Assembly: GCA_964035545.1 (NCBI GenBank)
Contig: OZ037767.1
Location: forward strand, 30,830,628 to 30,894,627
DNA: 64,000 nt
Direction: 5' to 3'
Source: Bugula neritina
Lineage: Eukaryota; Animalia; Bryozoa
Part shown: piece by piece, positions 112 through 63,460 of the stretch
Numbering within the stretch: position 1 is the first letter of the stretch
Layout: each line of letters begins with the position of its first letter
Position numbers and translations under genes: made by a program
The notes under the pieces: generated by a model
Databases searched by the model: none
What the model was told of the DNA's origin: nothing
The model's input: only the letters and a program-made list of their open reading frames with translations

Positions 112-2781
112 GTGGATCTAGTTGAAGGATATGCAGAGATTAAGGATAGAATACAGAGACTTGTATCTGTTGAGATATCTGAACTAGAACTGTGTGATGT
201 CATGACTCTAGAGGTCAAAGGTTAGTTGGTATAAGCTGACTATTGTATATTCATGTAATACTGTGTTACTGAATATGTTGTATTTATGTTTACTATCTAC
301 ATCATAGTCATTCTATACTCTCTTATATTAATTACTAGATTTAATTGTATAGGAAAGATAGAACAATACAACTCATGTATAAAATACAATACCATGCATA
401 CCAGTTTACAAACATTACTTCTACTTGTCATATGATACGGTGTAGAGATCTTTGTATATACTCACTATACTTTTATACTCTTCATTAATCCATGTTGAAC
501 TAGCATTATATTTACTATTCTATAATATATTCACTACTTTTATATAATATATTCACTACTATTATATAATATATTTACTACTATTATATAATATATTCAC
601 TACTATTATATAATATATTCACTACTATTATATAATATACTCACTACTATTATATAATATATTCACTACTATCATATAATATATTTACTATTCTATAATA
701 TATTCACTACTTTTATATAATATATTCACTACTATTATATAATATATTTACTACTATTATATAATATACTCACTGCTATTATATAATATATTCACTACTA
801 TTATATAATATATTCACTACTATTATATAATATATTCACTGATATTATATAATATATTCACTACTATTATATAATATACTCACTGCTATTATATAATGTA
901 TTCACTACTATTATATAATATATTCACTACTATTATATAATATATTCACTACTATTATATATTATATTCACTGCTATTATATAATATATTCACTACTATT
1001 ATATAATATATTCACTACTATTATATAATATATTCACTACTATTCTATAATATATTCACTACTTTTATATAATATATTCACTGCTATTATATAATATATT
1101 CACTACTATTATATAATATATTCACTACTATTATATAATATATTCACTACTATTATATAATATATTCACTACTATTCTATAATATATTCACTGCTATTAT
1201 ATAATATATTCACTGCTATTATATAATATATTCACTGCTATTATTTAATAGACTTCCTACAAACTCACTTCATTTGTTGTATTCACTATTATATACCATT
1301 ATCTTCACTACTGTTACATTACATTATATTCTCTGTTGTTTTATGATATATTATTTCCATCACTAACATGTAGTACTATTTTTACTATTAATATATAATG
1401 TTATATTCACTGCTATTATATAATGTTATATTCCCTACAAATAGTATAGTATAATATATTTAAGTAGTATATTAAGTACTATTTTATAATATGTTTACTT
1501 TATGCTATTATTTACTTTACTACATTTATATATACTTTACAGGAGAGAAGAGAGACATAGAAGTAGATTTAGTTTCTGCAGCAGACGTTTCTATTAGTTT
1601 GGATCAAGGAGTGACAACTTCTACTCTTCCTAATTCCCTCGAACTCTTTCAGTCTGTTGATGTTTCTGATTATTGTTACTCAGTCTGTAGATATGAGGGT
1701 AACACTTATGTAGGACTGCCTGGTAGAGTAGACAGAGTAGATGAGAACTATAATGTTACTCAGTCATTTGTTACAGTCAGTGGTTCTGTGTTTGGTCTTA
1801 CAGCATATAAAGATCAGCTGTATAGTTTAGTGCGAGGTGGCCTTAATAATTGGAAAGTAAATGTGTATGACTTTAGTGGTCATCAGGTGACCAGCTGGTC
1901 TCACAGCGACAATGTTGGGTATAGCAATACTTTTGTTATAGTGGATGATCAGGTTGTAGTCCCTGATAGACAAAGTAAAAGACTCACAATCTACTCTCTT
2001 ACTGGGGAGGTAATTAAACAAGTGCCCTGCTCTCTACTTAGTAGCAGTTATACGGCTATATGTGCAGCAGACAGACATTGTGTAGTAGTTTCTAATTACA
2101 TTTCCTCTCAAGTATTTAAGTTGGACCTGACAACAGAGAAAGTCATCTGGACATGTAAGGATGTGACTGACCCACAAGGTATGACCAGCTATAGAAGTAA
2201 ATATATCCTTGTGACTAACCAAAGCAGTAAAACCACTATCTGGATACTGGATGTGAAGACAGGTTAGTTGGTGTTTATTCTACCATATGGGAAGCTCTTG
2301 TACACAAACACACATTATAGTTGGTTGGCATGTATGCTCTCAGTCTAACCTTTAGATGAAAGCTATTACATGCTATATCATCATATATTATTATTAACAA
2401 TGTATATGGTAGCTATAAAGTATAGAAAACCTTTGCCATATATAATGCAGTATAATATTATAGTCATTACATATAATATTATCATATATAATATAGTTTC
2501 TTATTAACAGAGTATACTGTAGCTAGAGAGTATAAAAATCCTTTGTCTTATATAATGTAGTATGACCCTGTAGTGGGGTCTTTGTTGACATAACAATAGA
2601 GAAAGTAATATGTTAAATAAAGAATATTACATCATTTCCTGTTACAGGCACACAGCTGGCTAAGATAGAAGATCCAACTGTTAGAGAGAATAGTAATGTA
2701 TTTGATCTCCATGTGTATAGAGACACTCTGATTGTACCCAGATGTGATGAGAAGAAAGTTCTGTTCTACCAGCTCAAATGA
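112..2781 (+). CDS. TRIM-like (RBCC + NHL-like beta-propeller) gene copy 1, 5'-partial; exons 112-220, 1543-2262, 2648-2781
   Basis: GT/AG exons with matching phases, homologous to the last three coding exons of copies 2-6; ends VLFYQLK-TGA. Upstream exons lie outside the window. Confidence 0.9.
509..1245. repeat. 20-bp AT-rich minisatellite (TATAATATATTCACTACTAT), ~36 units, intron 6 of copy 1
   Basis: Visible tandem repeat; shorter versions in the same intron of copies 2, 3, 5 and 6, absent in copy 4. Confidence 0.9.
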
Positions 2782-4400
2782 ACAGGTATTATTGTAATAT
2801 TGTGTTTTATAGTCAAAGGGGATCTCTTATATTTTTTAATATAATATATTGATAAATATATTTCATGCTGAGGCTTTAAACCTGTAAATTACTGAATTTA
2901 CTCCTTGTTTTCATTTGCTCATATAATATCCTCTAATCTTTTCGCTGCTGTCTTTATCTGAACAAATGAAGTTTTATAATCTTTGGCAATATTATTCCAT
3001 ATGATAGTGTGATGTACTTCCTGTTATGTTGATACTCACATCTGATTGGTGTATGTTTTAGGTCATGTGGAGATAACCCTTACACTGTGTCAAAATGCTT
3101 GCTAGTTCTTGAGTACACTTGAGAATATCTTAGTAGTTGTCTTCTTACTCTTACAATGTCCCAGTCAGTGCCAACTGTTTATATTGAGTATTGTTTAGTA
3201 AGTTGTAGCAATTTCCTAATATTTGTCTTTTACTTATCTCTTGGTTCTTTGATATTGAAAACAATCTTTCACGAAAAAGATATTATTTACTGATGGTGAA
3301 ATGATAATTGCATTTTGTTCTAGTAAATACGTGTAGGTTTGCATGCAGTGGCTGGTTTTATTATACAATTTGTATTTTGCTGAACAAAATCTTTTAATAT
3401 TATTCTTTCTTTTCCATATTTCACTTTGTTGTTTTTTACTTTAAAGATTCTTTTGAGTTTTGACAATTATTGTGGTGATTATGGTTGCTTGTAACGAATT
3501 TTAGTTGCAACATTTAATGTTTTATGGAAAGCTTATGATTGAGATTTCTTCAAATGCAATATATATGATTATAATTATTATGTTCCTGTTTCCCTCCTTT
3601 TTGACGTGCACTAGTTACACCCTAAATCCAAATGTAGGCAAAATTATTGAATTGATTATATGTTGAACAATATTATGATTCTTGAGTAGTTTGAAAATTG
3701 TTGTTTTCAATTCAGTTTTATTAGTAAGATTTCGAAGCACAAATCACTTGAATGCTGCAACTAATGAGAACTCATGAATTCACTGACAATTCTCATGTAA
3801 CTCACATATCCATATTCATATATAATCCACATTGTAGCAGACATATGCAATGTACAGCAGGTGTGCGCAATTTATCAGAAGTTCACTCTAGTAGATGTAC
3901 ATACTGTAGCAAACGTACAGTTTATATCTTACAAATTTTGTGGTTGTGAAAAACTTTAACCACAAGTTTTCCTTTCAACTGTTACAACATCTTACATATT
4001 TTTTAATATACAAATACAGTTTATAAAGAAGACAAGTCTAAAAGGGTGATAGCTAGACTATCAATTAGTTAGTTGAAATTGGTGATTAGCATCAGTTGTG
4101 AACATGAATTAGTTAATGTGAACTTGTTTTGTGTACTACTGCTGTAGCAAGTAAATGCTATTGACTTTTACTCAACAGACTCTTTTGATCGATACTTTAT
4201 ATGCAGAATGTACTTATATTCTGCAAATATATAATTTATATTATAGTATATACGCACACGCATCAAACTTATAACCATTTAGAGTTTAGAAAATTAGATA
4301 TTATTGCAGTGTGTAGGACAAAAAAACCCAGAGAGTTGTCATTCTCTAGTGACCATAAATCAATTTTCGCGACTTCAAGATGCGAAAACGGCATTGATAT

Positions 4401-4455
4401 TTCCGGTGGGAAATCCCCAAATAAAATTCTCAGTTAGAGTTTGGTGGAAAACTGG
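4401..4455 (+). promoter_or_regulatory. ETS-like (TTCCGGT) + NF-kB-like (GGGAAATCCCC, 4408-4418) sites and end of non-coding exon 1 (donor GTAAG at 4456), copy 2
   Basis: Match to kB consensus GGGRNNYYCC; same position in all five complete copies; matching acceptor TTTAG at 5924, 27 nt before the ATG. Confidence 0.65.
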
Positions 4456-5951
4456 GTAAGTTGAATATTGGCAAATACTAAAAGTTGTTATATCAATCTC
4501 GTAATATTTTTGTACCCGAATTAAAAGTTTTTTTGTGAATAAATTTATATCAATAGATGTGAACTCGACATTGGCCTTGGGACTGAGGTTCGCTGCACAA
4601 TTTCAACAACAACTTCAAGTTGAAGTTGTACTACAGTTATAGGTCTAAGACCAAAGTTCAGTTTCATTTTGATTGTAAAATGATCAGTATTAATATTAAA
4701 TATAATATGATTATTGCTAATTCGTTGTCTTAATACAAACCTCGTTTGTGTTTTACTGAGAAAGTGATTGTCTTCAGGCTGTTATAACTATTTTAAGTAA
4801 TTTTTGTTATACCTAAAATAATTATCTACTCGCTTGGCTCTGCCTTTATGATAATAAATGTAAAGCATCAATAGATTACCTTATTTTTGTGTAAGTTTCT
4901 GCAGGAGCAGGTATTTTGGGGTTGTGTAGTTTGGAAGTCTGCGTCTCACTTTTCAGCTGCTCTCTTCTACGGCTATCTCTGTGATTATTCATTTATTGCT
5001 AATTCGTTTTCTTAATACTAACATCGTTTGATTTTTACTTTGATAGTGATTGTCTACAGGCCTTGGATTCCTATACTATAGTTATACTTATATCTTTCAA
5101 CAATTCAGTAAATTGACCTAATTTTAAAATTGATAGATGTTGATTTTCAAATATACAGGCAATTTTAATTCCACAAGCATTAGCTTAAGAATCAGTATGA
5201 AAGCTAGTTTTGTTCTGAGTTTAATATTGACAATTGTAATGGATAGTATTTGCGCTTCCAAGTTTTTACAGTTTCTTTGCATGAAAAGTACCTAATTATG
5301 TGAAATGAAGTGCTCTTCAGTTAATAAAGTTTTCAGCCAGCATGTTGGCGATGAATTTTGCCTGCTGCATTGTGCAATTCTTTTTTTAGTCCGATGAATG
5401 AGATATGTATGAATTTTACTTAAACAAAGTATAACTTCTTACTTTCTAACTGATGGTTAAGCATCACAAGCCTAATCCATCTTTGCACATCAAATATTTA
5501 CATAAACATGTAATAAGTAGACAATTCTATTTCCCTGAAATGAATTGGAACAGCAGATAGTGTCTCATACTTTAGTGTCTTAAAAAGTATGGTTTTTGTG
5601 CCATTCAGCTAGAGTTTGAAGCACAAAATTCGTTCCTGTCATGTGATACTATCTACTCTACTCCTTTTGGAAATAATTTGGCAAGTTTTATATTAGGTTG
5701 ATTTTATACCCCTTAATCCACAGCTACTCAACATAGAAATAATCTCAATATATCTTATAATTAGTTCTTTTAGTCTTTTGTTTTCTAAATACTCACTTCA
5801 CATGAACTAACCAGATATTTTCGTGATAACTAAGTGAACTAGTTAGTCTGATATATACACATAGTCTTGTAAACACTCTTCAGTTTCTGTTCTGTAAAGA
5901 TTAACTAATGCATATTTATTTTAGGTATTTTGACACAGTTATTGAAACAAG

Positions 5952-8856
5952 ATGGCTGAAGCAGAACCCAGAGAGATAGAGTGTGGGTTTTGTTTGTTAA
6001 AGGAAGGTCTTGAGAACCCAAAGTCTCTACCCTGTGGTCACATACATTGTTTACTTTGTCTAACTAGAAATGTTGATGTGAATGACCTGATCAGATGTCC
6101 CTGGTGCAGGTAAATTATATTACAAACTATGCTATTCTCAGACTACAAGTGTATCTATTTAACTTCATAGTGTGACTCTGATGCATGTTGAGTGTACTTT
6201 CTATTATATTCTGCATTATATGTGTTACAGAGAAGTGTTTGATGTGAGTATAGAGACTCTGCCTTCTGCTGATGTAGAGGACAACTCCACATCATGCTTT
6301 GTCTGTACTAAGAAGGGGATGAAGAATATCCCAGCTGTGATATACTGTACTGTGTGCAGTAAACTCTTTTGTGAGAAACATCGAGAGGTACTTTAATGTT
6401 GATTATTCTTTCTGCGGAATTTAGATGTGTAAAAATTAATAAAGAAAAAAACAACATAGTGATTTCTGACATGAAATATATTTCATAGTCACATGATGAT
6501 ACCAATGATGACCACCAGCAGTTGACCATATCAGAATACAGAGTACAAGCTAAGAGACTGGAAAAAAGAGTTTGTTCTAAACATACAGACTACCAAATAT
6601 CTCAGGGATGTAAACTCTGTGCTCAACTGTTTTGTGTGCAGTGTTTATCTCAGGCCGACTCTTGTGCTGGAGGTGAAATTTTTATCTTGCTCCTAATATA
6701 ATTTATTCACATTTAGTGTGCATGATAATTGGGAAAAAATATTTACTATACTCTATAATGACTACAACATTCTTGTCTGTTGGCTTGAATTAGTTACTAG
6801 CTTGTACTCACACCTAGTAAATGGGATTTATATATACAAATTATAGTAAATTGATAACAATATTTGTGGTCGTCTAACTGAAATGACACCCAAATCATTG
6901 TGGATTCTGTTTATGCTTTATTCTGTAAAATTAACTGTAGTTTAGTAATACATTTCCAGGTTCACTGCATGACATGGCTGGGTTAGATGACCTCATCAAG
7001 AAACTGGGGAATGTAGAAGAACTGATTACTACAGAAGACAAAGTATCTTCTCTCTTCAAACAACTTTCTAAAACTATATCTGACTTTGATACTGAAACAG
7101 GAGAGTTACTAGACATTCTCCATACACAGCGTGATGAACAGGTGTGATTGATATCACATTTTCTAGAATGTGTTTGTTTCCTGTCACACCTTGTAAAGGT
7201 TTTAATGGTTTACTCGTATGTTTTAGTTGGCTGAGGTGGGACTAAAGTATGAGAAACTTGAAGAGGAGTTCTTAGCTAGTAGAAAGAAAACTAAAGATGC
7301 ACTGGATGCATACATGGAGAGAGAAGTTGGAACTGTTTTGTCTGAACTGAGTAAAAGTAGAATGAAGATAGAAGCTCAACTCAGACAAAACAATCAGGTG
7401 TGTAGAGTTGAGATACAAATAACTTGTGCTGAATAATTGAGTCTGAAGAACACATTATTGTGTAAGTTGTGCAACATTACTTAAGTTGTTAGAATTTTAT
7501 TTTATATCTTTCAAAAGTCTCTAGGTTTGCTTCCAAAATATTGTTTGAACTGGTCTTAAACATACAGGATAATTGCATCGCATGATTATCTGCTGTACTT
7601 GAAAATAATTTTGCCTTTGTGAATAAATGTAAATTGTTGAATTGATAGGATAGTTTTTTAAAGAGGGAAATATTTTCAAGATTTTGAGAAACCCCTGAGT
7701 GAACTCATGGTCCACTAGTGACTAAAGTACAAGTATATTTCATAGTCAGATGTTAAAGGGATAATTTCTGAACTCTTGTTTGTTTTTATATTCAAAAACT
7801 TTCAAATCAAATTTAGACGCGGGTTTAGCTGTATGGCCTTTTAGGTTTGTAAAAACACATATTGCATGTTTTTATTAAATAGCAGTGAGTGAGTGACATT
7901 TATTGAGTGGTATTAATCAAGTAAGAAATAGCATGAATTTCATATTATTGTTACTATTGGTATGTTAATCTTCCTTTAATTATAGTTGATCTCTATTCAC
8001 AGGTGGATCTAGTTGAAGGATATGCAGAGATTAAGGATAGAATACAGAGACTTGTATCTGTTGAGATACCTGAACTAGAACTGTATGATGTCATGACTCT
8101 AGAGGTCAAAGGTTAGTTGGTATAAGCTGACTATTATATATTCATGTAGTACTGTGTTACTGAATATGTTGTATTTATGTTTACTATCTACATCATAGTC
8201 AATCTATACTCTATTATATTAATTACTAGATTTAGTTGTATAAGAAAGATAGAACATTACAACTCATGTATAGAATACAATAACCATACATACCAGTTTA
8301 CAAACATTACTTCTATTTGTCATATAATACAGTGTAGAGATCATTGTATAAACTCACTTTACTTTTATACTCTTTTAAACCCCATGTTGATCTATCATTA
8401 TACTTGCTACCATTATATAATATATTTACTACTATTATATATTATATTCACTGCTATTATACAATATATTTACTGCTATTATATAATATATTCACTACTA
8501 TTATATAATATATTTACTACTATGATATAATATATTCACTACTATGATATAATATATTCACTACTATTATATAATATATTCACTACTATTATATAATATA
8601 TTCACTACTATTATATAATGTATTCACTACTATTATATAATATATTCACTACTATTATATAATATATTTACCATTATCATATAATATATTCACTACTATT
8701 ATATAATATATTCACTACTATTATATAATATATTTACTACTATTATATAATATATTCACTACTATTATATAATATAGTCCCACTAATATACAAATGTTCA
8801 ACTATAAACAGATATTGTTTCTACCATTTAATAATTTGATTTTACATAACATAATA

Positions 8857-8908
<52 letters not shown>

Positions 8909-10154
8909 TTTACAGGAGAGAAGAGAGACATAGAAGTAGATTTAGTTTTTACAGCAGACGTATCTATTAGTTTGGATCAAGGAGTGACAACTTCTACTCT
9001 TCCTAATTCTCTCAAACTCTTGCAGTCTGTTGATGTTTCTAGAGGTTGTTACTCAGTTTGTAGCTATGAGGGTAACACTTATGTAGGACTGTATGGTGAT
9101 GGAGTAGATAGAGTAGATGAGAACTATAATGTTACTCAGTCATTTGTTACTGTCAGTGGTTCCGTGTGTGGTCTTACAGCATATAAAGATCAGCTGTACA
9201 CTTTAGTGCGAGGTGGCAGTAATAATTGGAAGGTAAAAGTGTATGACTTTAGTGGGAATCAGGTGACCAGCTGGACCCATAGTGATAATACTTGGTCTAC
9301 CAATACACTTGCTATAGTTAATGATCACGTTGTAGTCCCTGATAGACTAAATAGAAGACTCACAATCTACTCTCTTACTGGAGAGGTAATTAAACACATA
9401 CCCTGCCCTGTGCTTAGTAACCATCGTGTAGCTATATGTGCAGCAGACAGACATTGTGTAGTAGTTTCTGATTACAATTCTTCTCGAGTATTTAAGTTGG
9501 ACCTGACAACCGAGAAAGTCATCTGGACATGCAAGGATGTGACTAACCCACAAGGTGACCTGCTATAGAAGTAAATATATTCTTGTGACTAACTACAGCA
9601 GTAAAACCACTATCTGGATACTGGATGTGGAGACAGGTTAGTTGGTGTTTATTCTACCATATGGGAAGCTCTTGTACACAAACACACATTATAGTTGGTT
9701 GGCATGTATGCTCTCAGTCTAACCTTTAGATGGAAGCTATTACACGCTATATCATCATATATTATTACTAACAAGGTATGTGGTAGCTGCAAAGTATAGA
9801 AAACCTTTGCTATATAAAATGCAGTATAGATTTGTAGTCATTACATATTATATTATCATATGCAATATAGTTTTTTATTAACAGAGTATACAGTAGCTAG
9901 AGAGTATAAAAATCTTTTGTCTTATATAATGTAGTATGACCCTGTAGTGGGGTCTTTGTTGACATAACAATAGAGAAAGTAATATGTTAAATAAAGAATA
10001 TTACATTATATCCTGTTACAGGCACACAGCTGGCTAAGATAGAAGATCCAACTGTTAGAGAGAATAGTAGTGTATTTGATTTTCATGTGTATAGAGACAC
10101 TCTGATTGTACCCAGACGTGATGACAAGAAAGTTCTGTTTACCAGCTGAAATGA
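5952..10154 (+). pseudogene. TRIM-like copy 2 with a 2-nt deletion in the propeller exon; exons 5952-6109, 6231-6387, 6489-6672, 6960-7141, 7227-7397, 8003-8111, 8916-9636, 10022-10154
   Basis: RING-HC CGFC..CGHIHCLLC..CPWC, two B-boxes, coiled coil. Exon 7 is 721 nt (CAAGGTGACC vs CAAGGTGTGACC), giving PQGDLL-stop at 9566-9568. Could be an assembly error. Confidence 0.75.
8410..8907. repeat. 20-bp minisatellite (~18 units, to ~8775) and (TA)n tract (~8863-8907) just before the exon 7 acceptor, copy 2
   Basis: Visible repeats; same arrangement in copy 6. Confidence 0.85.
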
Positions 10155-11789
10155 ACAGGTATTATATAATGCTGTGTTTTTTTAGTCAAAAGGGATCTCC
10201 CATTTTATTTAATATATATTGACAAATATATTTCATGTAGATACTTTAAACCTGTAAATTACAGAATTTACTCCTTGTTTTCATTTGCTCATATATTATC
10301 CTCTAATCTTTTCACTGCTGTCAATCTTTCTCTCAGCAAATTATGAAGTTTCATAATCTTTGACAATATAATTCCATATGATAGTGTGATGTACTTCCTG
10401 TTATGTTGATACTCACATCTGATTGGTGTATGTTGTAGTTCATGTGGAGATAACCCTTACACTGTGTCAAAATGCTTGCTAGTTCTTGAGTACACCTGAG
10501 AATGTCTTAGTAGTTGCCTTCTTACTCTTAGAATGTCTCAGTCAGTGCCAACTGTTTATATTAAATATTGTTTAGTAAATTGTAGCAATTTCCTAATATT
10601 TGTCCTTTACTTATCTCTTTGTTCTTTGATATTGAAAACAATATTTCACAATATTAATATTATTTACTGATAGTGAAATGATAATTGCACTTTGTTCTGG
10701 TAAATACGTGTAGGTTTGCATGCAGTTGCTGATTTTATTATACAATCTTATATCGTTTGTATTTTGCTGAAAAAACCTTTTAATGTCATTGTTTCTTTTC
10801 CATATTTCACTTTATTGTTTTTTTACTTTCAAAGCTAATTTTGAGTTTTGACAATTATTGTGGTGATTATGGTTGCTTGTAACGAGTTTAGTTGCAACAT
10901 TTAATGTTTTATGGAAAGTTTATGATTGAGATTTCTTCAAATACAATATATATAATTATAATTATTTTGTTCCTGTTTCCCTCCTTTTTGACAGGCACTA
11001 GTTACACCCTAAATCAAAATGTAGGCAAAATTATTGAATTGATTATATGTTGAACAATATGATTCTTGAATAGTTTGAAAATTGTTGTTTTAAATTCAAA
11101 TTTATTAGTAAGATTTCGAAGCACAAATCATCTGAATGCTGCAACTAACGAGAACTCAAGAACTCACTGACAGTTATCATGTAACTCACATATCTATATT
11201 CATGCATAATCCACATTGTAGCAGGTATATGCAGTGTACAGCTGGTGTGCACAATTTATCATAAGTGCATTTTAGTAGATGTACATACTGTAGCAAACGT
11301 ACAGTTTATATCTTACAAATTTTGTGGTTGTGAAAAACTTTAACCACTGGTTTTTCTTTCAACTGTTACAACATTCCTACATATTTTTTTAATATACAAA
11401 TACATCTTATAAAGAAGACAAGTCTAAAAGAGTGATAGCTAGAGTATCAATAAGTTAGTTGAAATTGGTGATTAGTATCAGTTGTCAATATGAAATAGTA
11501 AATGTAAACTTGTTGGGTGCACTACTGCTGTAGGAAGTAAATGCTATTGACTTTTACTCAACAAACTCTTTTGATCGATACTATGTTTTCCGAATGTTCT
11601 TATATATGCGGCAAAGATATTATTTATATTATAGTATATACGCACACGCATCAAACTTATAACCATATTTTAGACTTTAAAGAATTAGATATTATTGCAT
11701 TGTGCAAGGCAAAAAACAATAGAGTTGTCCTGCCTTCGTGAGCATAAAATAATTTTTGAGACTTCAAGCCGCGAAAACGGCATTGCTAT

Positions 11790-11844
11790 TTCCGGTGGGG
11801 AATCCCCAAATAAAATTCTCAGTTAGAGTTTGGTAGAAAAGTAG
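11790..11844 (+). promoter_or_regulatory. ETS-like + NF-kB-like (GGGGAATCCCC, 11797-11807) sites and non-coding exon 1 donor (11845), copy 3
   Basis: Near-palindromic p50-type kB site at the homologous position. Confidence 0.65.
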
Positions 11845-13128
11845 GTAAGTTGAATATTGGCATATACTGAAAGTTGTTATATCAATTTATGCTTGTACCT
11901 TTGGCCTCAAAATATGGTAATATTTTTGAACCCGCATTGAAGGTTTTTTTGTGATTAAATTTATATCAATAGATGTGAACTCGACATTGGCCTTGGGACT
12001 GAGGTTCGCTGCACAATTTCAGCAACAACTTCAAGTTGAAGTTGTACTACAGTTATAAGTCTAAGACCAAAGTTCAGTTTCATTTTGATTGTAAAATGAT
12101 CAGTATAAATAATAAATATAATATGATTATTGCTAATTCGTTGTCCTAATACTAACGTCGTTTGATTTTTACTTTGATAGTGATTGTCTACAGGCCTCAG
12201 ATTCCTATACTATAGTTATAATTTTATCTTTCAACAATTCAGTAAATTGACCTAAACTTAAAATTGATAGATGTTATTACTCAAATATACAAGTGATTTT
12301 TACTTGACAAGCATTAGATTAAAATTAGCATGAAAGCTTGTTTTGTTCTGAGTTTAATATTGACAATTGTAATGGATGGTATTTGCGCTTCCATATTTTT
12401 ACAGTTTCTTTGCATAAAAAGTACCATATTTTGTGAAAAGAAGTGCTCTTCAGTTAATAGAGTTTTCAGCCAGCGTGTTGGCAGTGAATGTTGCCTGCTG
12501 CATTGTGCAAGTCTTTTTTTAGTCAGATGAATGAGACATGTATAAATGTTACTTAAACAAAGTATAACTTCTTACTTTCTAACTGATAGTTAAGCATCAT
12601 CTATCATTAATACTGCATTTCTGTCTTTGCACCTCAAATATTTACATAAACATATAATAAGTAGAAGAATCTATTTCCCTGAAATGAATTGGAACAGCAG
12701 AGAGTGTCTCAAACTTTAGCGTCTTAAAGAGTATGATTTTAGTACCATTCTGCTAAAATGGTACTAAAAGCACTAAATTTGTTCCTGTTTTGTGATGCTA
12801 TCTACTCTACACCTTTTGGAAATAATTTGACAAGCTTTATATTAGGTTGAATTTATACCCTAAGTCCACAGGTATTCAACATAGAAATAATCTCAATATA
12901 TCTTATAATTAGTTCTTTTAGTCTTTTTTGCATTCTAAATACTAAATACTCACTTCACATGAACTAACCTTGTATTTTTGTGATAACTAAGTGAACACAG
13001 CTATAGTTATGACTACTAGTTAATCTAATATATACACATAGTCTTGTAAACACTCTTCAGTTTCTTTTCTGTAAAGATTAAGTAATGCATATTTATTTTA
13101 GGTATTTTGACACATTTATTGAAACAAG

Positions 13129-26111: not shown

Positions 26112-26168
26112 ACTTCCGGTCGGGAATCCCCAAATAAAATTCTCAGTTGGAGTTTGGTGGAAAAGTAG
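26112..26168 (+). promoter_or_regulatory. ETS (ACTTCCGGT) + NF-kB-like (GGGAATCCCC, 26122-26131) sites and non-coding exon 1 donor, copy 5
   Basis: Canonical class-I ETS site next to a kB site. Confidence 0.65.
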
Positions 26169-30400: not shown

Positions 30401-33400
30401 TTTACTGCCAAATACCAGTATCAGCAAATCATGAATGATATTCATTATGATTATCATTATGAGTAACCGTACCTCAAACTGTGAGTCATAGTGAGTCATT
30501 TAAATAGTTACTAATATAGAATAGACATACTCCTAGTGATATTCATATTATCAGTATGAATATTAATAAGAAAATAACTACAAATAATCCTAGCAACAAT
30601 TCTAAGTTAGTAGCGTAAATGATGGTTTTGAGTATAATTACCTGCATTGTTGTGATTTTCAAGCTTGAACGCTAAAGATAAAGATTAAGTTTAGCATTTA
30701 TCACCAAAGGGCAAAACAGCTCAGTAACTTAAAAGCTAACTTCGGATGGAGCACGATGAAAAACTAAAACTAGCCTTCGATTTTAAATACGATGCTTCTG
30801 ACAATGCGAAGAAAGAGGTGTAAGCTAAATTCATTTGATAAAAAATAAATTTGCAAGATCTCATGCTATGAAAATGACTAAAATTGTCTTCTTTCTTTAC
30901 TTGATAACTTCGCAATTTTTTCATCATTTAAAAAATTGAATGCCTTAGTTACCAACTTTAAATGCAATTTTAGAGCTGAAGGAATCATCAAATGCTTACG
31001 AAAGTATGATTTTTGAAATCCTTGGATTTTTTTGTATTAGAAAAGTTCAAAACCTAAAAACTGGAAATTAATTTCAAATTTAAGTATTTCCAAATTAAAC
31101 CTTCATTTACTACACTTTATAAACGCCGCCACATCCCCGGTTTTGTCGCGACTGGTCACATATTTTCTAGGCCCATGATGACTTAAATGATGATCACCAG
31201 CAGTTGACCATATCAGAATACAGAATACAAGCTAAGAGACTGGAAAGAAAAGTTTGTTCTAAACATACAGATTACCAAATATCTCAGGGATGTAAACTCT
31301 GTGCTCAACTGTTTTGTGTGCAGTGTTTATCTCAGGCCGACTCTTGTGTTGGAGGTGAAATTTTTATATTGCTCCTAATACTATTTATTCACATTTAGTG
31401 TGCATTATAATTTGAAAAAAAAATTAAATGTACTCTATTATGACTACAACATTCTTGTCTGTTGGCTGGAATTAGTTACTCACACCTAGTAAATGAGATT
31501 TTATATATACAAATTATAGCAAATTGGTAGCAAAATTTTGGGTCGTCTCACTGGAAGTCGTCTAACTGAAATGACACCCAAATCATTGTGGATTCTGTGA
31601 CTGTTTTATCCTGTAACATTAACTGTAGTTTAGTAATACATTTCCAGGTTCACTACATGACATGGCTGGGTTAGATGACCTCATCAAGGAACTGGTGAAT
31701 GTAGAAGAACTGATTACTACAGAAGACAAAGTATCTTCTCTATTCAAACAACTTTCTAAAACTATATCTGACTTTGATACTGAAACAGGAGAGTTACTAG
31801 ACATTCTCCATACACAGCGTGATGAACAGGTGTGATTGATATCACATTTTCTAGAATGTGTTTGTTTCCTGTCACACCGTGTAAAGGTTTTAATGGTTTA
31901 CTCGTATGTTTTAGTTGGCTGAGGTGAGACTAAAGTATGAGAAACTTGAAGAGGAGTTCTTAGCTAGTAGAAAGAAAACTAAAGATGCACTGGATGCACA
32001 CATGGAGAGAGAAGTTGGAACTGTTTTGTCTGAACTGAGTAAAAGTAGAATGAAGATAGAAGCTCACCTCAGACAAAACAATCAGGTGTGTAGAGTTGAA
32101 TTACAAGTAACTTGTGTTGAATCATTGAGTCTGGGTTAAAATTATGTGATGATTGTATCGCATGATTATCTGCTGTACATGAAAACAATTTTGTTTTGGT
32201 GAATAAATGTAAATTGTTGAATTGATAGGATAGTGTGAAGAATCTGGAAATATTTTCAAGATTTTGAGAAAACCCCTGAGTGAACTGATGTTCCACTAAT
32301 GACTAAAGTACAAGTATATTTCATAGTTAGATGTTAAAGGGATGATTTCTGAACTCCTGTTTGGTTTTATATTCCAAAAAGCAGTTTCAAAAAAGAAGCT
32401 TAAAAATGTTTATGTTGATATTTATTCTCTCTATTGAATATTTTCTGATTGCTGGAGAAGTTTTATTAAAATTTTCCAATCAAATTTAGAAGCTGGTTTA
32501 GCTGTGTGGCTATTTTAGGTCTGTAAAGGCACATATTGCATGTTTTTATTAACTATCAGTGAGTCAGTGATATTCACTGAGTAGATTTTTTAAAGTTTTT
32601 ATTCTGCATTAAACAAGAAAGAATCAGTTTTAATTTCACATTATTGTTGCTAATCTTCATGTAATTATAGTTGATCTCTACTCACAGGTGGATCTAGTTG
32701 AAGGATATGCAGAGATTAAGGATAGAATACAGAGACTTGTATCTGTTGAAATACCTGAACTAGAACTGTGTGATGTCATGACTCTAGAAGTCAAAGGTTA
32801 GTTGGTACAAGCTGACTATTATATGTTCATGTGGTACTGTGTTACTGAATCACCGGCTTTCCATGTACCGATCTCAGATCGATCTTAGCGAGATCGATCC
32901 ATGGAAAGACGCCAAAGATCCATCTCCGTTGATCTGAGCTGGTCGGTCTGTGGAGCTCGAACTCAGATCGATCTCATGTCAATAAGACCATGGAAAGACG
33001 CCAGATCGATCTGAGAAGTAGAAAAAGACTGCGCGCTACAATGTTGTCTGCTAATAAAAATGACAACTTATTGATAATTACTAAGCAAAGTATTAAATAA
33101 TTATGATAGCCACCTTTTCAGATGCCAAAACTTTGACTTTCAGTATAATGATTAAGAAAACTCAATTATATGCAGTAAAAGGTAAAAAAATGCGAGAATT
33201 TAAATTGAATTTAAATGACTATTAAAACTTAGTTTCATTATAGCTATTTTCTTTGCAATTTTAAGCCTAACAGTCCTGTAAGTTTATTAATAATCTGCAA
33301 GACAGCCATTAATTTTATATAAGCTGTCAAGCTAAAAACTTAAAATTAATTATTTTAAATTGGCCAAATTACCATACACTGAAAGCTTTGCTGCGTATAG

Positions 33401-35564
33401 TTTATAGCTGGGATTAAATTTTAGCTTACTACCATCTTGTTTTCAACAGTAGTAGCTTTAATCACTCAAATAGGTGGACAAATTATACTTTTAAAGTATC
33501 CTTCACTTAAGAGGAGGCAACTTCGCGAGTTCGATCTGACACTCTCATGGAAAAACGATCGATCTGAGATCGGTACATGGAAAGCCCGTGAATATGTTGT
33601 ATTTATGTTTACTATCTACATCATAGTCAATCTATACTCTCTTATATTAATTACTAGATTTAATTGTATAGGAAAGATAGAACGTTACAACTCTTGTGTA
33701 GAATACAATAACCATACATACCAGTTTACTAACATTACTTCTACTTGTCATATGATACAGTGTAGAGATCTTTGTATATACTTCCTATAATTTTATACAA
33801 GTTTGTGTATTCTTTGAAACCCCAGCGTTGAACTGTCATAATATTTTCTGCTACTATATAATATATTCACTGCTATTATATAATATATTTACTACTATTA
33901 TATAATATATTCACTACTATTATATAATATATTCACTACTATTATATAATATATTCACTACTATTTTATAATGTTATGTTAACTGCTATTATATAATAGA
34001 TTTCCTACAAACGCATCCTATTTCTATATTCTTTATCACTCCATGTTGAACTATAATGTTATCTTTCTTATTATATAACATTATCTTCACTACTGTTACA
34101 TTACATTATATTCTCTGTTCTTTTATGATATATTATTTCCATCACTAACATATAGTACTATCTTCACTATTATTATATAATGTTATATTTTCTGCTATTA
34201 TATAATGTTATATTCCCTACAAATAGTATAGTATAATAATTGTGTTTAAGTAGTAGATTCAGTACTATTTTATAATATATTTGATTTATGCTATTATTTA
34301 ATTTAGTACATTTATATATACTTTACAGAGGAGAAGAGAGACATAGAAGTAGATATAGTTTCTACAGCAGACGTATCTATTAGTTTGGGTCAAGGAGTGC
34401 CAACTTCAACTCTTCCTAATTCTCTCAAACTCCTACAGTCTGTTGATGTTTCTACAAATTGTTGGCCAGTTTGTAGATATGAGGGTAACACTTATGTAGG
34501 ACTGCCTGATAGACTAGACAGAATAGATGAGAACTATAATGTTACTCAGTCATTTGTTACAGTCAGGGGTGTTGTGTTTGGTCTTACAGCATATAAAGAT
34601 CAGCTGTATAGTTTAGTACGAGTTGGCAATACTAGTTGGAAGGTAAATGTGTATGACTTTAGTGGGAATCAGGTGACCAGCTGGTCTCATAGTGATAATA
34701 TTGGGATTAGCAATAAACTTGTTATAGTTGATGATCAGGTTGTAGTCCCTGATAGACCAAGTAAAAGACTCACAATCTACTCTCTTACTGGGGAGGTAAT
34801 TAAACAAGTGCCCTGCTCTCTACTTGGTAACAATTGGGTAGCTATATGTGCAGCAGACAGACATTGTGTAGTAGTTACTGATAACAATTCCTCTCAAGTA
34901 TTTAAGTTAGACCTGACAACAGAGAAAGTCATCTGGACATGTAAAGATGTGACTAGACCACAAGGTGTGACCTGCTATAGAAGTAAATATATTCTTGTGA
35001 CTAACTACAGCAGGAGAACCACTATCTGGATACTGGATGTGAAGACAGGTTAGTTGGTGTTTATTCTACCACATGGGAAGCTCTTGTACACATACTATAG
35101 TTGGTTGGCATGTATGCTCTCAGTTTAACCTTTAGATGGAAGCTATTACATGCTATATTATCACATTATATTATTACTAACAATGTATATGGTAGCTATG
35201 AAGTATAAAAAACCTTTGTTAAATATAATGCAGTATAACTTTATACTCATTACATATAATATTATCATATATAATATAGTATCTTATTAACAGAGTATAC
35301 AGTAGCTAGAGAGTATTGAAATCCTCTGTCTCATATAATATAGTATAATCCTGTAGTGGGGTCTTTGTTGACATAACAATAGAGAAAGTAATATGTTAAA
35401 TAAAGAATATTACATCATTTCCTGTTACAGGCACACAGTTGACTAACATAGAAGACGCAACTGTTAGAGAGAATAGTTATGTACTTGATCTCCATGTATA
35501 TAGAGACACTCTGATTGTACCCAGATGTAATGAGAAGAAAATTCTGTTTTACCAGCTGAAATAA
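27481..35564 (+). CDS. TRIM-like copy 5 (604 aa) with two intronic transposons; exons 27481-27638, 27776-27932, 31171-31354, 31648-31829, 31915-32085, 32688-32796, 34329-35048, 35431-35564
   Basis: Intact spliced frame; intron 2 expanded by 3.1 kb and intron 6 by 0.74 kb. Confidence 0.88.
28025..31160. mobile_element. 3136-bp non-autonomous TIR DNA element, superfamily unresolved
   Basis: Imperfect 30-bp TIRs TGTGACCTGGCACCACAAAACAAGGGATGT / ACATCCCCGGTTTTGTCGCGACTGGTCACA. TSD is TA (or ATAT); removal restores the acceptor spacing seen in copies 3 and 6. Confidence 0.85.
32851..33590. mobile_element. 740-bp MITE with CAC...GTG termini and 3-bp TSD (AAT), CACTA/Chapaev (CMC)-like
   Basis: 34-bp TIR CACCGGCTTTCCATGTACCGATCTCAGATCGATC (1 mismatch), subterminal CCATGGAAAGACGCCA repeats; empty site TACTGAATATG in other copies. 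Confidence 0.9.
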
Positions 35565-37196: not shown

Positions 37197-37277
37197 ACTT
37201 CCGGTGGGGAATCCCCAAATAAAATTCTCAGTTGAAGTTTGATGGAGAAATAGGGAAGTTGAATATTGGCAAATACT
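37197..37277 (+). promoter_or_regulatory. ETS (ACTTCCGGT) + NF-kB-like (GGGGAATCCCC, 37206-37216) sites and non-coding exon 1 with shifted donor (GTAAGT at 37278), copy 6
   Basis: Both motifs are consensus matches; the donor used by the other copies reads GG at 37254-37255. Confidence 0.65.
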
Positions 37278-38549: not shown

Positions 38550-41500
38550 ATGGCTGAAGCAGAGCCCAGGGAGATAGAGTGTGGGTTTTGTTTGTTAAAG
38601 GAAGGTCTTGAGAACCCAAAGTCTCTACCCTGTGGTCACATACATTGTTTAGTTTGTCTAACTAGAAATGTTGATGTGAATGACCTGATCAGATGTCCTT
38701 GGTGCAGGTGAATTATATTACATACTATGCTATTCTCAGACTACAAGTGTATCTATTTAACTTCATAGTGTGACTCTAATTCATGTTGAGTGTACTTTCT
38801 ATTATATTCGGCATTATATGTTACAGAGAAGTGTTTGATGTGAGTATAGAGACACTGCCTTCTGCTGATGTAGAGGACAACTCCACATCATGCACTGTCT
38901 GTACTAAGAAGGGGATAAAGAATATCCCAGCTGTGATATACTGTACTGTGTGCAGTAAACTCTTTTGTGAGAAACATAGAGAGGTACTTTAATGTTGATC
39001 ATCTTGTTTGAACAATTGAAACTGTGTAGAGAAGGAAACCAGACAAAAACACCTGCCTTCCTGACATTCAATATCTTCTTTAGGCCCATGACATTGTTAG
39101 TGATGACCACCAGCAGTTGACCATCTCAGAATACAGAATACAAGCTAAGAGACTGGAAAGAAGAGTTTGTTCTAAACATACAGATTACCAAATGTCTCAG
39201 GGGTGTAAACTCTGTGCTCAACTGTTTTGTGTGCAGTGTTTATCTCAGGCCGACTCTTGTGTTGGAGGTGAAATTTTTATATTGCTCCTGATATTATTTA
39301 TTCACATTTAGTGTGCATGATAATTGGGAAAAAATATTTACTATACTCTATAATGACTACAACATTCTTGTCTGTTGGCTGGAATTAGTTACTAGAGTTG
39401 CCTCACACCTAGTAAATGGGATTTTATATATACAAATTATAGTAAATTGATAGCAATATTTGTGGTCGTGTAACTGAAATGACACCCAAATCATTGTGGA
39501 TTCTGTTAATGCTTTATCCTGTAAAATTAACTGTAGCTTAGTAATACATTTCCAGGTTCAGATCATAAAATGCTCAGTCTGGATGACCTCATCAGGGAAC
39601 TGGTGAATGTAGAAGAACTGATTACTACAGAAGACAAAGTATCTTCTCTCTTCAAACAACTTTCTAAAACTATATCTGACTTTGATACTGAAACAGGAGA
39701 GTTACTAGACATTCTCCATACACAGCGTGATGAACAGGTGTGATTGATATCACATTTTCTAGAATGTGTTTGTTTCCTGTCACACCATGTAAAGGTTTTA
39801 ATGGTTTACTCGTGTGTTTTAGTTGGCTGAGGTGAGACTAAAGTATGAGAAACTTGAAGAGGAGTTCTTAGCTAGTAGAAAGAAAACTAAAGATGCACTG
39901 GATGCATACATGGAGAGAGAAGTTGGAACTTTTTTGTCTGAACTGAGTAAAAGTAGAATGAAGATAGAAGCTCAACTCAGACAAAACAATCAGGTGTGTA
40001 GAGTTGAATACAAATAACTTGTGCTAAATAGTTGAGTCTAAAGAACACAGTATTGTGCAAATGGCGCAACATTACTCAAGTTGTTAGAGTTTTATTTTAT
40101 ATTTTCAAACAGTCTCTAGGTTTGCTTGTAAAACATTGTTTGAACTGGTTTTAAAATTATATGATAATTGTATCAAATGATTATATGCTGTACTTGAAAA
40201 CAGTTTGTTTTGGTGAATAAATGTAATTTCTTGAATTGATAGGATAGTTTGAAAAATGTGGGAAATATTTTCAAGATTTTGAGAAACCCTTAAGTGAACT
40301 AATGTCCCACTAGTGCAGTGGTTCCCAACCTTTTTCATACTATTCCCTCCTTTCATAATTATTTACTATTAATTTCCCCCCTTTAAAAGAGCGAAAATAT
40401 TTTATGACTTACTGAATGAGAATATATATGAAACAATGCAATATATTTTGTTCTATTATATTTGCATATCCTATGATTAAGATAACATTATTATTATCGT
40501 TATGAAACACAGAGCAGTTCAGTTATTAATGTTATGGCTGCAGCTGATAATATTGTGCCAGCTTGCTTACGTCTGGCTCTGTGTTTGATCAGGCCCATCT
40601 TAGGTCACCTTGCAGGTTGAGGCAGTTTCTCTTCTCTTTGAATTGATGAGAGTCCTACCTCAGACAGATAGGTGGTGCTGGATGGCACCAAAAATCTGCT
40701 TTGTCAGTTATGTGTGGGAAGAGTTTGCTTGTTGAAACTCACGATTATTTTAGGTAAAACTGGTGCATGTAAAAATGGCACAGGTAATAATGGCACAAAT
40801 GGAAAATTAAGTAGAAACGACACACCGATGTTATATTATTACAAACTCAAACCCCAAACTCTCCTCTCTAAGCCCCCAACCCTTGAACATCTACCCTACA
40901 CTTCAGAACTCCAAGTACAAACCCTAAATCCTCACCTCAAAACCTTCTTTCAAACTCCAAACCCCCACCCCAAAATTGAAAACATATGCCATTTTTTCCT
41001 ACTTTTCCATTTGTGCTATTATTACCTGTACCATTTCTACTGGACGCTAACCCACAATACATCAACTTGAGAAAATTTCCTGTCACCCTTCATTGCTGAA
41101 TTGTGAACCAACTCAATATAATCCTCCTGTAACACCTCTGAAAACTTGTCAACAAACCGTTGCAATGGGTCACATGTCAAGTTGAGAATCTAGCTCTTTC
41201 TTTGTCGGAGGTAGCGCAGAGAAATGCCTTTAAAAGTCGATTAAAATTTCAGAGAAATGCCTAGAAAGATTTTTAGAAAACGATCTGGAACAGTTGGTGT
41301 CCAGGGAAAAAATGGCAGATAATAATGGCACAAATGGAAAATTAAGTAAAAATGGCACATTTTCAATATTAGCATTGTAGATTTGAGTTGGGGGGTCAGG
41401 CATTCAGGATGGCGGGTTTGGGTTTGGCAAATTCTAACACCAGTATGCATTTTTACCTGTGCCATTTTTACCTACAATCGTAACAGGTTCTTCTCCTGTA

Positions 41501-43314
41501 AAATTTCATTGAGTGTGGGGAAAAACACCATGTTTTTAATAGACGCCACCACTTTAGTGTAACTTTAAAAACATTGATGCTGCTATGAAAAGCAATGATA
41601 TGAAGATGCACTCCTGCATTTTTAGGTTTAGACTATTCAGTGTAGCAAATATATTCACTAGGTATGTAGTATACAGTTTATAGAGATTGACTTGCATGGC
41701 TGCTAAAAGTTGACCTGTTGGTTTTTGCATCTTTTTGACCTCCATTCGAAGTAGCACAGGGAAGAGTTATGGTAGAGTAATTATTAAACACATTCATGTA
41801 GAAGTAAACCAAGATTGCAGAATATATGGTTTGGTTAAATAAATGAACTAAAATGAAGGTTTATAGATATACATATACATGTAACTTGCAAGAGTTCAAA
41901 AACCGTCAACAAAATGCGTAAATTTTTCAAAGTCCAAATTCCCCCACTAAAATATCCAAATTCTCCCCTAGGGGAGAATTACCCCAGGTTGAGAACCACT
42001 GCACTAGTGACTAAAGTACAAGTAAATTTCATAGCTAGATGCTAAAGGGATAACTTCTGAACTTTTGTTTATTTTTATATTCCAAAATGTGGTTCTAAAA
42101 AAGAAACTTAAAAAGGTTTATGTTGATATTCATTCTCTTTATTAAAAATTCGACGATTGGAGAAGTTTTTTATTAAGATTTTTTAATCGAATTTAGAAGC
42201 TGGTTTGTAAAGGCGCTTTGCATGTTTTTATTAGATAACAGTGAGTCAGTGATATTTATTGAGTATTTATTAAGTTTTTATTCTGCATCAACCAAGAAAG
42301 AATCAGCTTTAATTTCACATTATTGTTGCTAATCTTCCTGTAATTATAGTTGATCTCTATTCACAGGTGGATCTAGTTGAAGGATATGCAGAGATTAAGG
42401 ATAGAATACAGAGACTTGTATCTGTTGAGATACCTGAACTAGAACTGTGTGATGTCATGACTCTAGAGGTCAAAGGTTAGTTGGTATAAGCTGACTATTA
42501 TATATTCATGTAGTACTGTGTTACTGAATATGTTGTATTTATGTTTACTATCTACATCATAGTATAGCTGTACTCTATTATATTAATTACTAGATTTAAT
42601 TGTATAGGAAAGATAGAATATTACAACTCTTGTATAGAATACAATACCATACATACCAGTTTATCAACATTACTTCTATTTGTCACATGATACGGTGTAG
42701 AGATCTTTGTATAAACTCACTCTACTTTTATACTCTTCATTAATCCATGTTGAACTATCATTATCTTTAATATTATTATATAATATATTTACTACTATTA
42801 TATAATATATTCACTACTATTATATAATATACTCACTGCTATTATATAATATATTCACTACTATTATATAATATATTCACTACTATTATAAAATATGTTC
42901 ACTACTATTATATAATATATCCACTGCTATTCTATAATATCTCCACTACTATTATATAATATATTTACTACTATTATATAATATATTCACTACTATGATA
43001 TAATATATTCACTACTATTATATAATATATTCACTACTATTATATAATATATTCACTACTATTATATAATGTATTCACTACTATTATATAATATATTCAC
43101 TACTATTATATAATATATTTACCACTATCATATAATATATTCACTACTATTATATAATATATTCACTACTATTATATAATATATTTACTACTATTATATA
43201 ATATATTCACTACTATTATATAATATAGTCCCACTAATATACAAATGTTCAACTATAAACAGATATTGTTTCTACCATTTAATAATTTGATTTTACATAA
43301 CATAATAATATAAA

Positions 43315-43385
<71 letters not shown>

Positions 43386-44654
43386 TTTACAGGAGAGAAG
43401 AGAGACATAGAAGTAGATTTAGTTTCTACAGCAGACGTATCTATTAGTTTGGATCAAGGAGTGACAACTTCTACTCTTCCTAATTCTCTCAAACTCTTGC
43501 AGTCTGTTGATGTTTCTAGAGGTTGTTACTCAGTCTGTAGCTATGAGGGTAACACTTATGTAGGACTGACTGGTGGGGGAGTAGACAGAGTAGATGAGAA
43601 CTATAATGTTACTCAGTCATTTGATACAGTCAGTGGTTCTGTGTTTGGTCTTACAGCATATAAAGATCAGCTGTACACTTCAGTGCGTGATGGCAGTAAT
43701 AATTGGAAGGTAGAAGTGTATGACTTTAGTGGTCATCAGGTGACCAGCTGGTCTCACAGTGATACTAGTAGTGGGTATAGCAATGAACTTGTTATAGTTG
43801 ATGATCAGGTTGTAGTCCCTGATAGACAAAGTAAAAGACTCACAATCTACTCTCTTACTGGGAAGGTAATTAAACAAGTGCCCTGCTCTCTACTCAGTAA
43901 CAGTTATACAGCTATATGTGCAGCAGACAGACATTGTGTAGTAGTATCTGATTACGTTTCCTATCAAGTATTTAAGTTGGACCTGACAACAGAGAAAGTC
44001 ATCTGGACATGTAGAGATGTGACTGGACCACAAGGTGTGACCTGCTATAAAAGTAAATATATTCTTGTGACTGACTACAGCAGTAAAACTACTATCTGGA
44101 TACTGGATGTGAAGACAGGTTAGTTGGTGTTTATTCTACCATATGGGAAGCTCTTGTACACACACACTATAGTTGGTTTGCATGTATGCTCTCAGTTTAA
44201 CCTTTAGATGGAAGCTATTACATGCTATATTATCATATATTATTATTAACAATGTATATGGTAGCTATAAAGTATACAAAACATTTGCCATATATAATGC
44301 AGTATAATATTATAGTCATTACATATAATATTATATATAATATAGTTTCTTATTAACAGAGTATACAGTAGCTAGAAAATATAGAAAACCTTTGTCTTAT
44401 ATAATGTAGTCTAACCTTGTAATCAAGATCTTTATTGATATATAATATTCGTATAATATAATTTGATATTTGAGAACAGAATGTGTTAAACAGAGGTTGT
44501 TACATCATTTCCTGTTACAGGCACACAGCTGGCTAAGATAGAAGATCCAACTGTTAGAGAGAATAGTAATGTATTCGATCTTCATGTGTATAGAGACACT
44601 CTGATTGTACCCAGAAATAATGAGAAGAAAGTTCTGTTCTACCAGCTCAACTAA
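38550..44654 (+). CDS. TRIM-like copy 6 (606 aa); exons 38550-38707, 38827-38983, 39084-39267, 39556-39737, 39823-39993, 42367-42475, 43393-44118, 44521-44654
   Basis: Intact spliced frame ending VLFYQLN-TAA. Confidence 0.92.
40316..42001 (-). mobile_element. Decayed hAT (Charlie/Buster-like) transposon with transposase remnants and two nested small elements
   Basis: TIR CAGTGGTTCCCAACCT / AGGTTGAGAACCACTG, 8-bp TSD CACTAGTG. Minus-strand fragments LVPSSTTYLSEVGLS, KRNCLNLQGDLR.A.SNTEP and LQEDYIELVHNS resemble the hAT C-terminal dimerisation region. Confidence 0.92.
42770..43384. repeat. 20-bp minisatellite (~22 units) plus (TA)~33 before the exon 7 acceptor, copy 6
   Basis: Visible repeats. 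Confidence 0.85.

Positions 44655-63252: not shown

Positions 63253-63460
<208 letters not shown>

Follow-up and report, generated by a model that had tools for sequence, protein, structure and literature searches.

TRIM proteins of the NHL type (class C-VII or subfamily C: TRIM2, TRIM3, TRIM32, TRIM56, and TRIM71/LIN-41, with Brat, Mei-P26, and Thin/Abba) join a RING domain, two B-boxes, and a coiled coil (together RBCC) to a C-terminal six-bladed propeller; the known members are conserved regulators present in few copies, whose top face is basic and binds RNA. Large ubiquitin-ligase families with a constant ligase side and a positively selected substrate side are found among the F-box and MATH-BTB proteins of nematodes and the S-locus F-box proteins of plants, which are cullin adaptors. 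Within the TRIMs, teleost finTRIMs (84 genes in zebrafish [PMC2657112]) and primate TRIM5alpha combine lineage-specific tandem expansion, a conserved RBCC, and recombination with positive selection focused on the loops of the C-terminal recognition domain; they are vertebrate proteins with a B30.2/PRY-SPRY sensor and shown or virus-induced antiviral roles. A link between tandem TRIM expansions and defence has been foreseen in broad outline (PMC3503706), and one NHL-like TRIM, the single-copy TRIM56, is antiviral (PMC6623546). In the literature, which was incompletely covered, we found nothing relevant on bryozoan, lophotrochozoan, or bivalve TRIM-NHL expansions, on bryozoan TRIM immunity, or on a large, positively selected TRIM-NHL repertoire. 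Here, we describe an array of TRIM genes with a predicted NHL-type propeller in a 64,000-nucleotide stretch (the window) of the genome of the bryozoan Bugula neritina (GenBank assembly GCA_964035545.1, contig OZ037767.1, positions 30,830,628 to 30,894,627).

The Bugula genes have the TRIM-NHL architecture, with a putative coiled coil, but, unlike known TRIM-NHLs, exceed 100 copies, are 9 to 18% identical to solved NHL domains, and have a near-neutral, hypervariable top face; unlike most C-VII members, they fall under the Pfam NHL cut-off, lack a filamin domain, and probably lack a basic surface. They resemble finTRIMs and TRIM5alpha in expansion, conserved RBCC, recombination, and the focus of selection, yet they are lophotrochozoan, carry an NHL propeller as putative sensor, and are not finTRIM members. 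They also differ from the nematode and plant cullin adaptors in being single-chain RING TRIMs.

The window (G000:C3:30830628-30894627 of a 216-Mb assembly; AT-rich; GC content, ~32%) contains six tandem TRIM genes on the plus strand, in units of 7 to 11 kb that are ~83 to 92% identical, introns included (Table 1). This bears out the six-copy array described in an initial annotation of the same sequence, which overlooked that copy 2 is broken by two frameshifts (2 nt are deleted near 9555, giving a stop at 9566, and 1 nt near 10140). Because of these deletions, the last loops of copy 2 are read in shifted frames; the copy is either a genuine pseudogene or an assembly slip, the two being indistinguishable from this sequence. 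Copies 1, 3, 4, 5, and 6 have open frames of 604 to 606 amino acids (aa), that of copy 1 (L007) being an intact 604-aa frame whose exons 1 to 5 lie upstream of the window. Each gene has eight coding exons with AG/GT borders, in the order RING, B-box1, B-box2, coiled coil (three exons), linker plus blades 1 to 5 (~720 nt), and sixth blade. An additional exon between exons 5 and 6 was ruled out, as the copy 4 intron there is short and plain and RNA joints skip 14660-15395. The array extends upstream of the window with five further genes directly adjoining, and three more genes lie ~370 kb downstream on the opposite strand; the upstream neighbour gene (L006) has a stop at codon 166.

The RING matches zf-C3HC4 (PF00097) at 21.8 bits (cut-off, 21), retains 8/8 zinc ligands, has an Arg after the last Cys, and evolves at a nonsynonymous/synonymous rate ratio (dN/dS) of 0.16; by analogy, we infer that the RBCC half has E3 ligase activity. 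The B-boxes are two Cys/His motifs in exons 2 and 3, of which exon 3 matched PF00643 at E 6e-4, under the curated cut-off; those of homologs gave weak matches to PF00643 and PF22586. Exons 4 to 6 encode a putative coiled coil (~150 aa, E/K/L-rich and helical-looking), followed by a linker of ~30 aa. No filamin domain was matched before the propeller in full-length homologs, and neither a signal peptide nor a membrane segment is evident in the proteins.

The product of a window exon 7, folded alone with AlphaFold2 (AF2), gave a model with a predicted local distance difference test (pLDDT) score of 91, and the complete propeller of a Watersipora homolog (P0208), used as the six-blade model, gave a pLDDT of 94 with six four-stranded blades (24 propeller strands). 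The top structural matches were the NHL domains of Brat, Mei-P26, TRIM2/3, Thin, and LIN-41/TRIM71 (template modelling [TM] score, ~0.77; Z, 20 to 22, with ~22 for Mei-P26 and Brat; identity as given above). A family profile search put the same NHL proteins first among natural sequences (E ~5e-12), and the Atlas neighbours of the propeller carry PF01436. Pfam NHL (PF01436) itself had no match in the five window proteins and one, at E 0.009, among 21 homologs. WD40, PQQ, and Kelch propellers were rejected because their Pfam matches were sub-threshold only, the profile and structure searches placed NHL first, and the model is six-bladed; B30.2 (PRY-SPRY) is absent, since the C-terminal domain is a beta-propeller in the model and structure search. 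Together, the models and both searches support the initial annotation in identifying the genes as TRIMs with an NHL-type six-bladed propeller.

The ligand-binding (top) surface of NHL propellers is made up of the b-c and d-a loops (PMC4015489; see also PMC9634614). Faces were assigned from the DSSP strand order according to that definition, not from coordinates, and exons were joined for alignment and codon statistics only. Averaged over the five intact copies of the window, protein identity is 62% in the top-face loops, 92% in the bottom-face loops, and 89% in the propeller strands; it is 94% in the RING, 95% in B-box1, 94% in the coiled coil, and 86% in B-box2. The loop strings listed earlier agree with the translations where checked. 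The description of variation as confined almost entirely to the loops of one face fits the contrast between top and bottom loops, but B-box2 is just 86% identical and three RBCC sites are weakly selected. Likewise, the reported richness in Y/W/S/G/N/D at variable sites holds for Y, W, and N (and also H), but S and G occur at about the background level and D a little less often. In four of five introns, the Jukes-Cantor (JC) distance is 0.2 to 0.33 and exceeds the synonymous divergence (dS) of coiled coil and propeller; conversion has therefore probably homogenised the framework. Intron 4 (85 nt, 14408-14492 and paralogs) and the flanking coiled-coil exons are near invariant (JC 0.03), reflecting either a recent conversion sweep or constraint.

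Of the at least 150 propeller loci in the genome, 42 were examined, none from the C5, C7, or C8 clusters. GY94 site models were fitted separately to two clades, one of 13 genes (C3, the window's own clade) and one of 22 (C6 clusters). M2a and M8 beat their nulls in both (likelihood ratio test [LRT], 165 to 196 in C3 and 366 to 418 in C6; omega, 5.7 to 6.8 at 10 to 13% of codons); for M8 versus M8a, the values were LRT 165, omega 5.7, and 13% of sites in C3 and LRT 366, omega 6.5, and 11% of sites in C6. Sites with a posterior of >0.95 lie on the top face in 23 of 26 (C3) and 23 of 25 (C6) cases and on the bottom face in 0 and 1 (Fisher p 1e-6 and 3e-5). The predicted structure accordingly places the variable sites on the d-a/b-c face, where the initial annotation had put them. 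Fourteen selected positions are common to both clades, an overlap with p 5e-7 even within top-face positions. The RBCC half has an omega of 0.30. Pooled, tree-free dN/dS for the top loops was only 1.2 to 1.7, at 1.64 (1.04 to 2.77) and 1.20 (0.81 to 1.79). None of the findings that the initial annotation had named as grounds for rejection (a loop ratio not above 1, variable sites buried or scattered over both faces, or no transcription) was obtained. When sites picked in one clade were tested in the other, omega was 2.0 and 2.9 (LRT 8 and 28), with neighbouring codons at 0.7 to 0.8. Outside the assembly, five nearest-counterpart pairs from a second source had 63 nonsynonymous and 18 synonymous changes at top-face codons, versus 18 and 20 at bottom-face codons.

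The copies have also recombined with each other, including between their RBCC and propeller halves: a test modelled on the pairwise homoplasy index (PHI) gave p 0.001 for whole genes and for C6 propellers, nearest neighbours switch exon by exon, and the RBCC and propeller trees reject each other (approximately unbiased [AU] p 4e-6 and 0.039). Simulations of neutral evolution with free recombination and block rate variation yielded LRT values of 14 to 58; the real data, handled identically, gave 188. These simulated values are already significant, so nominal chi-square p values are unreliable; the real signal still exceeds them, by 3 to 10 times, and a recombination artefact was rejected. Intron 6 contains a 22-bp AT-rich minisatellite just 5' of the propeller exon (5 to 34 copies per gene, absent in copy 4, and often followed by (AT)n), which could promote recombination between RBCC and propeller.

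The substitution pattern bears on whether a dedicated diversifier, possibly somatic, is aimed at the loop codons (by a diversity-generating retroelement [DGR]-like or AID/APOBEC-like mechanism or by programmed conversion). Changes do concentrate at codon positions 1 and 2, local synonymous rates are raised 2- to 4-fold, and serines at variable sites are mostly AGY. Variable codons are, however, transversion-rich and mutate at all four bases, with no adenine-only or C/G-only bias and CpG linkage only in part; TGG and NNA/G codons are common, and neither a template repeat nor a reverse transcriptase was seen among the open reading frames (ORFs) and repeats of the window. DGR- or AID-type mutagenesis does not fit this spectrum, and a dedicated diversifier is extremely improbable. 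The earlier comparison with antibody complementarity-determining regions (CDR-like) stands for a germline repertoire only; signs of somatic or DGR-type mutagenesis are absent.

Genome-wide, the propeller exon is matched at least 150 times, with ~110 matches near full length, in clusters on contigs C3 to C9; the family is spread over at least nine contigs and is not one haplotype locus. Matches to the RING exon are distributed in parallel for the closer members. All named relatives of the propeller are Watersipora subatra proteins (33 to 42% identical) annotated automatically as "uncharacterized" or "TRIM2-like" (for example, XP_067940339.1, XP_067944401.1, and XP_067933344.1), with the same architecture, ~560 to 660 aa, and many copies on several chromosomes. 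Near-identical DNA was found in Joint Genome Institute (JGI) "metagenome" contigs labelled AY690838, the mitochondrial accession of B. neritina. Kinship and label agree in pointing to a cheilostome bryozoan, very probably this species. The second source had no propeller >93% identical to the genes examined (best matches, 76 to 93%). Two loci 56 kb apart, L034 (C6:11483254) and L035 (C6:11539623), have DNA-identical propeller regions, which points to duplication or conversion in the very recent past or to a duplicate in the assembly. Separately, dozens of RING exons, 30 to 38% identical, are clustered at C8:6.6-7.2 Mb and 9.3-9.4 Mb without a listed family propeller exon; we read them as a candidate second large RING/TRIM array, possibly with another C-terminal domain.

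Spliced expression was found at family level. In three putative RNA runs (contigs), depth falls on the eight exons and is near zero in introns, with GT..AG joints at 5 of 7 predicted junctions among the matches listed; these contigs, which bear no treatment labels, were matched at 85% likeness, so they show expression of the family and not of each copy. In a confirmed metatranscriptome, one contig equals copy 3 exactly over 169 nt. One RNA contig of run X2 joins exon 6 to exon 8 (window 15504-17373) at GT..AG, with only 30 letters on its shorter side; the joint would represent an in-frame loss of five blades, giving an RBCC-only-like isoform, or a paralog without exon 7.

Copies 2 to 6 share a kB-like decamer 1.33 to 1.56 kb before the ATG, beside an ETS-like TTCCGG and within a CpG-enriched patch that is usually followed by a splice donor. 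To judge by these signals, the patch is probably a promoter with a non-coding first exon. The five window sites descend from one ancestral site, so a shuffle statistic overstates them; the decamer is also kept in three diverged paralogs (L014, L016, and L019) amid unrelated flanks, and the genome encodes Rel-homology domains (RHD genes).

Several observations weigh against selection by pathogens as the source of the loop diversity. Searching upstream of 20 genes did not reveal the kB-like motif in ~8 of them, for some of which the flank examined was short, and the motif may simply mark a promoter. The site models are a home-made implementation with naive empirical Bayes (NEB) posteriors, applied to loops that contain indels. 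Variable codons exceed intron divergence by only ~1.5- to 2-fold, not by an order of magnitude. In the window's clade, a "fast but neutral" codon class fits better than M2a, and omega drops to 1.64 (p 0.03) when the fast class is allowed a separate synonymous rate. The last of these would suit a non-adaptive origin, in which relaxed loops drift, conversion homogenises the framework, and CpG or multi-nucleotide mutation mimics selection: in the C3 clade synonymous rates are raised at variable codons and the neutral fast-codon model fits well, coding dS is below intron divergence, and CpG is depleted (observed/expected, 0.34), with some sites toggling among C/R/H/Y codons. Against this, the bottom loops, which are equally exposed, remain 92% identical. 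Freeing the synonymous rate still leaves an omega of 3.07 in the C6 clade (p 2e-9), where variable codons match the rest in purely synonymous divergence (0.079 versus 0.082). CpG is involved in only 19 to 33% of variable-site transitions, and transversions dominate, so that a pure CpG artefact accounts for a minority of changes; the same 14 positions recur in two clades. A non-adaptive origin is very unlikely, and even pooled with a dedicated diversifier it has only a slim probability. Since omega is 1.6 to 3 once synonymous rates vary, selection is real but weaker than naive models indicate. Diversifying selection with an effective omega of ~2 to 3 acts together with recombination; its presence agrees with the initial annotation, and its strength depends on the model (omega ~6 under M2a/M8, 1.6 to 3.1 with synonymous-rate variation).

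The nature of the variable surface bears on the ligand. Across 39 genes, the net charge of top-half residues averages +1.1 (range, -5 to +6; counted from sequence rather than mapped electrostatically), and variable sites show no excess of K/R. The genes might encode a diversified set of RNA-binding repressors of the Brat, LIN-41, or TRIM56 kind, in which every propeller reads its own transposon or RNA-virus motif and silences or degrades the target. The closest solved structures are indeed RNA-binding TRIM-NHL domains, NHL top faces have evolved distinct RNA specificities (PMC5908797), the C-terminal part of TRIM56 binds viral RNA (PMC6623546), and aromatic Y/W/H are enriched at the variable sites. 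Known binders, however, have a positive top face (PMC4015489), against the charge counted here, and we consider RNA repressors unlikely. The near-neutral, aromatic- and Asn-rich variable surface suits protein binding better than the basic surface of RNA-binding TRIM-NHLs does.

We favour, with moderate confidence, a germline repertoire of intracellular pathogen-sensing E3 ligases with protein-like ligands. The diversification may be pathogen-driven, as suggested by the kB-like promoter motif and the analogy with finTRIM/TRIM5. The family would be a bryozoan-specific birth-and-death array of TRIM (RBCC)-NHL E3 ligases serving as a cytosolic sensor repertoire; broken copies and family size point to birth and death, and the lack of an evident signal peptide or membrane segment suggests a cytosolic location. 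From TRIM biology, the coiled coil would dimerise, the B-boxes would give higher-order assembly, and the RBCC half would recruit an E2, the RING transferring ubiquitin once the propeller binds. The target would be foreign, most likely a protein of a virus or intracellular microbe or else an RNA-protein particle, and would be bound by the propeller top face, where ~25 exposed residues are kept different between paralogs and alleles by diversifying selection, tandem duplication, loss, and recombination/gene conversion. Binding would lead to ubiquitination and clearance, or to signalling, and the genes may be induced through the NF-kB-type promoter site.

A colonial host also brings to mind allorecognition (self/non-self, as with S-locus F-box proteins) or the control of bacterial symbionts. 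The differences between the assembly and the second source are large, and a variable-propeller E3 repertoire resembles collaborative non-self recognition. The proteins are nevertheless apparently cytosolic, the family occupies many contigs instead of one haplotype locus, and the kB-like motif points to inducible immunity; we regard this alternative as distinctly unlikely. Returning to pathogen sensing, its most specific form, a lophotrochozoan parallel to TRIM5/finTRIM in which 100-plus NF-kB-inducible, individually variable NHL "intracellular antibodies" fused to an E3 are reshuffled by gene conversion, resting on a domain hitherto seen chiefly as a conserved RNA reader, is tentative and falls somewhat short of an even chance.

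Other features of the window are listed in Table 1. The insertion in copy 6 has terminal inverted repeats that start with CAGTGGTT and shows an 8-bp target duplication (CACTAGTG); we read it as a putative non-autonomous hAT-like element with nested inverted repeats. The two insertions in copy 5 are probable DNA transposon remnants or miniature inverted-repeat transposable elements (MITEs). Downstream of the array, a minisatellite interrupts the exons of a gene that resembles Ser/Thr kinases (CAMK-type motifs seen by eye) and is the source of two spurious 550-aa ORFs.

Table 1. Coordinates of features in the window (position 1 is its first nucleotide)
Feature	Position	Strand	Details
Copy 1, 3' part	112-2781	+	Exon 6 112-220 (coiled-coil end); exon 7 1543-2262; exon 8 2648-2781 (last blade, stop)
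Copy 2	5952-10154	+	Exons 5952-6109, 6231-6387, 6489-6672, 6960-7141, 7227-7397, 8003-8111, 8916-9636, 10022-10154
Copy 3 (605 aa)	13129-17508	+	RING 13129-13286; B-box1 13482-13638; B-box2 13739-13922; coiled coil 14226-14407, 14493-14663, 15398-15506; propeller 16256-16978; last blade 17375-17508; GT..AG joints in RNA contigs
Copy 4 (604 aa), compact	20700-23595	+	Propeller exon 22438-23157; last exon 23462-23595
Copy 5 (604 aa)	27481-35564	+	Propeller exon 34329-35048; last exon 35431-35564
Copy 6 (606 aa)	38550-44654	+	Propeller exon 43393-44118; last exon 44521-44654
Selected top-face codons, copy 3 exon 7	16379-16938	+	Propeller positions 42-227, counted from codon 16258
Selected positions shared by both clades (14)			43, 45, 59, 82, 98, 126, 127, 144, 170, 186, 210, 227; exon 8: 257, 273
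ETS + kB-like, copy 2	4399-4460	+	Decamer 4408-4417; splice donor 46 nt downstream
ETS + kB-like, copy 3	11788-11850	+	Decamer 11797-11806; donor site
ETS + kB-like, copy 4	19135-19200	+	Decamer 19144-19153
ETS + kB-like, copy 5	26112-26175	+	Decamer 26122-26131
ETS + kB-like, copy 6	37197-37260	+	Decamer 37206-37215
22-bp minisatellite	513-1250, 8407-8790, 15802-15924, 33851-34002, 42774-43241		Intron 6
Insertion, copy 5 intron 2	28022-31163		Bounded by 33-nt inverted repeats (82%)
Insertion, copy 5 intron 6	32850-33591		Bounded by 35-nt inverted repeats (97%)
Insertion, copy 6 intron 5	40308-42009		1.7 kb
Open frame, Ser/Pro/Lys-rich	49985-51145	+	386 codons; no Pfam match; probably large exon of neighbouring gene
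Ser/Thr kinase-like gene exons	51500-57350	-	
Minisatellite in kinase-like gene	54451-56037		48 bp x 33
34-bp repeat	56825-57149		
(TG)102 microsatellite	63254-63457		Adjoins exon below
Exon with UBA-like segment	63767-64000	-	UBA-like segment, then CxxC motif

The novelty of this array lies in its domain (NHL), its scale, and its phylum. Familiar as a conserved RNA- or protein-binding module of developmental regulators, the NHL propeller would here have been redeployed as a fast-diversifying recognition surface on a TRIM ligase. With ~25 candidate specificity positions on a small, well-folding domain, ligand and specificity are directly testable. The family may offer a handle on specific intracellular recognition in invertebrates, which lack antibodies, and would amount to a natural propeller-binder library in which every member comes linked to a degrader.

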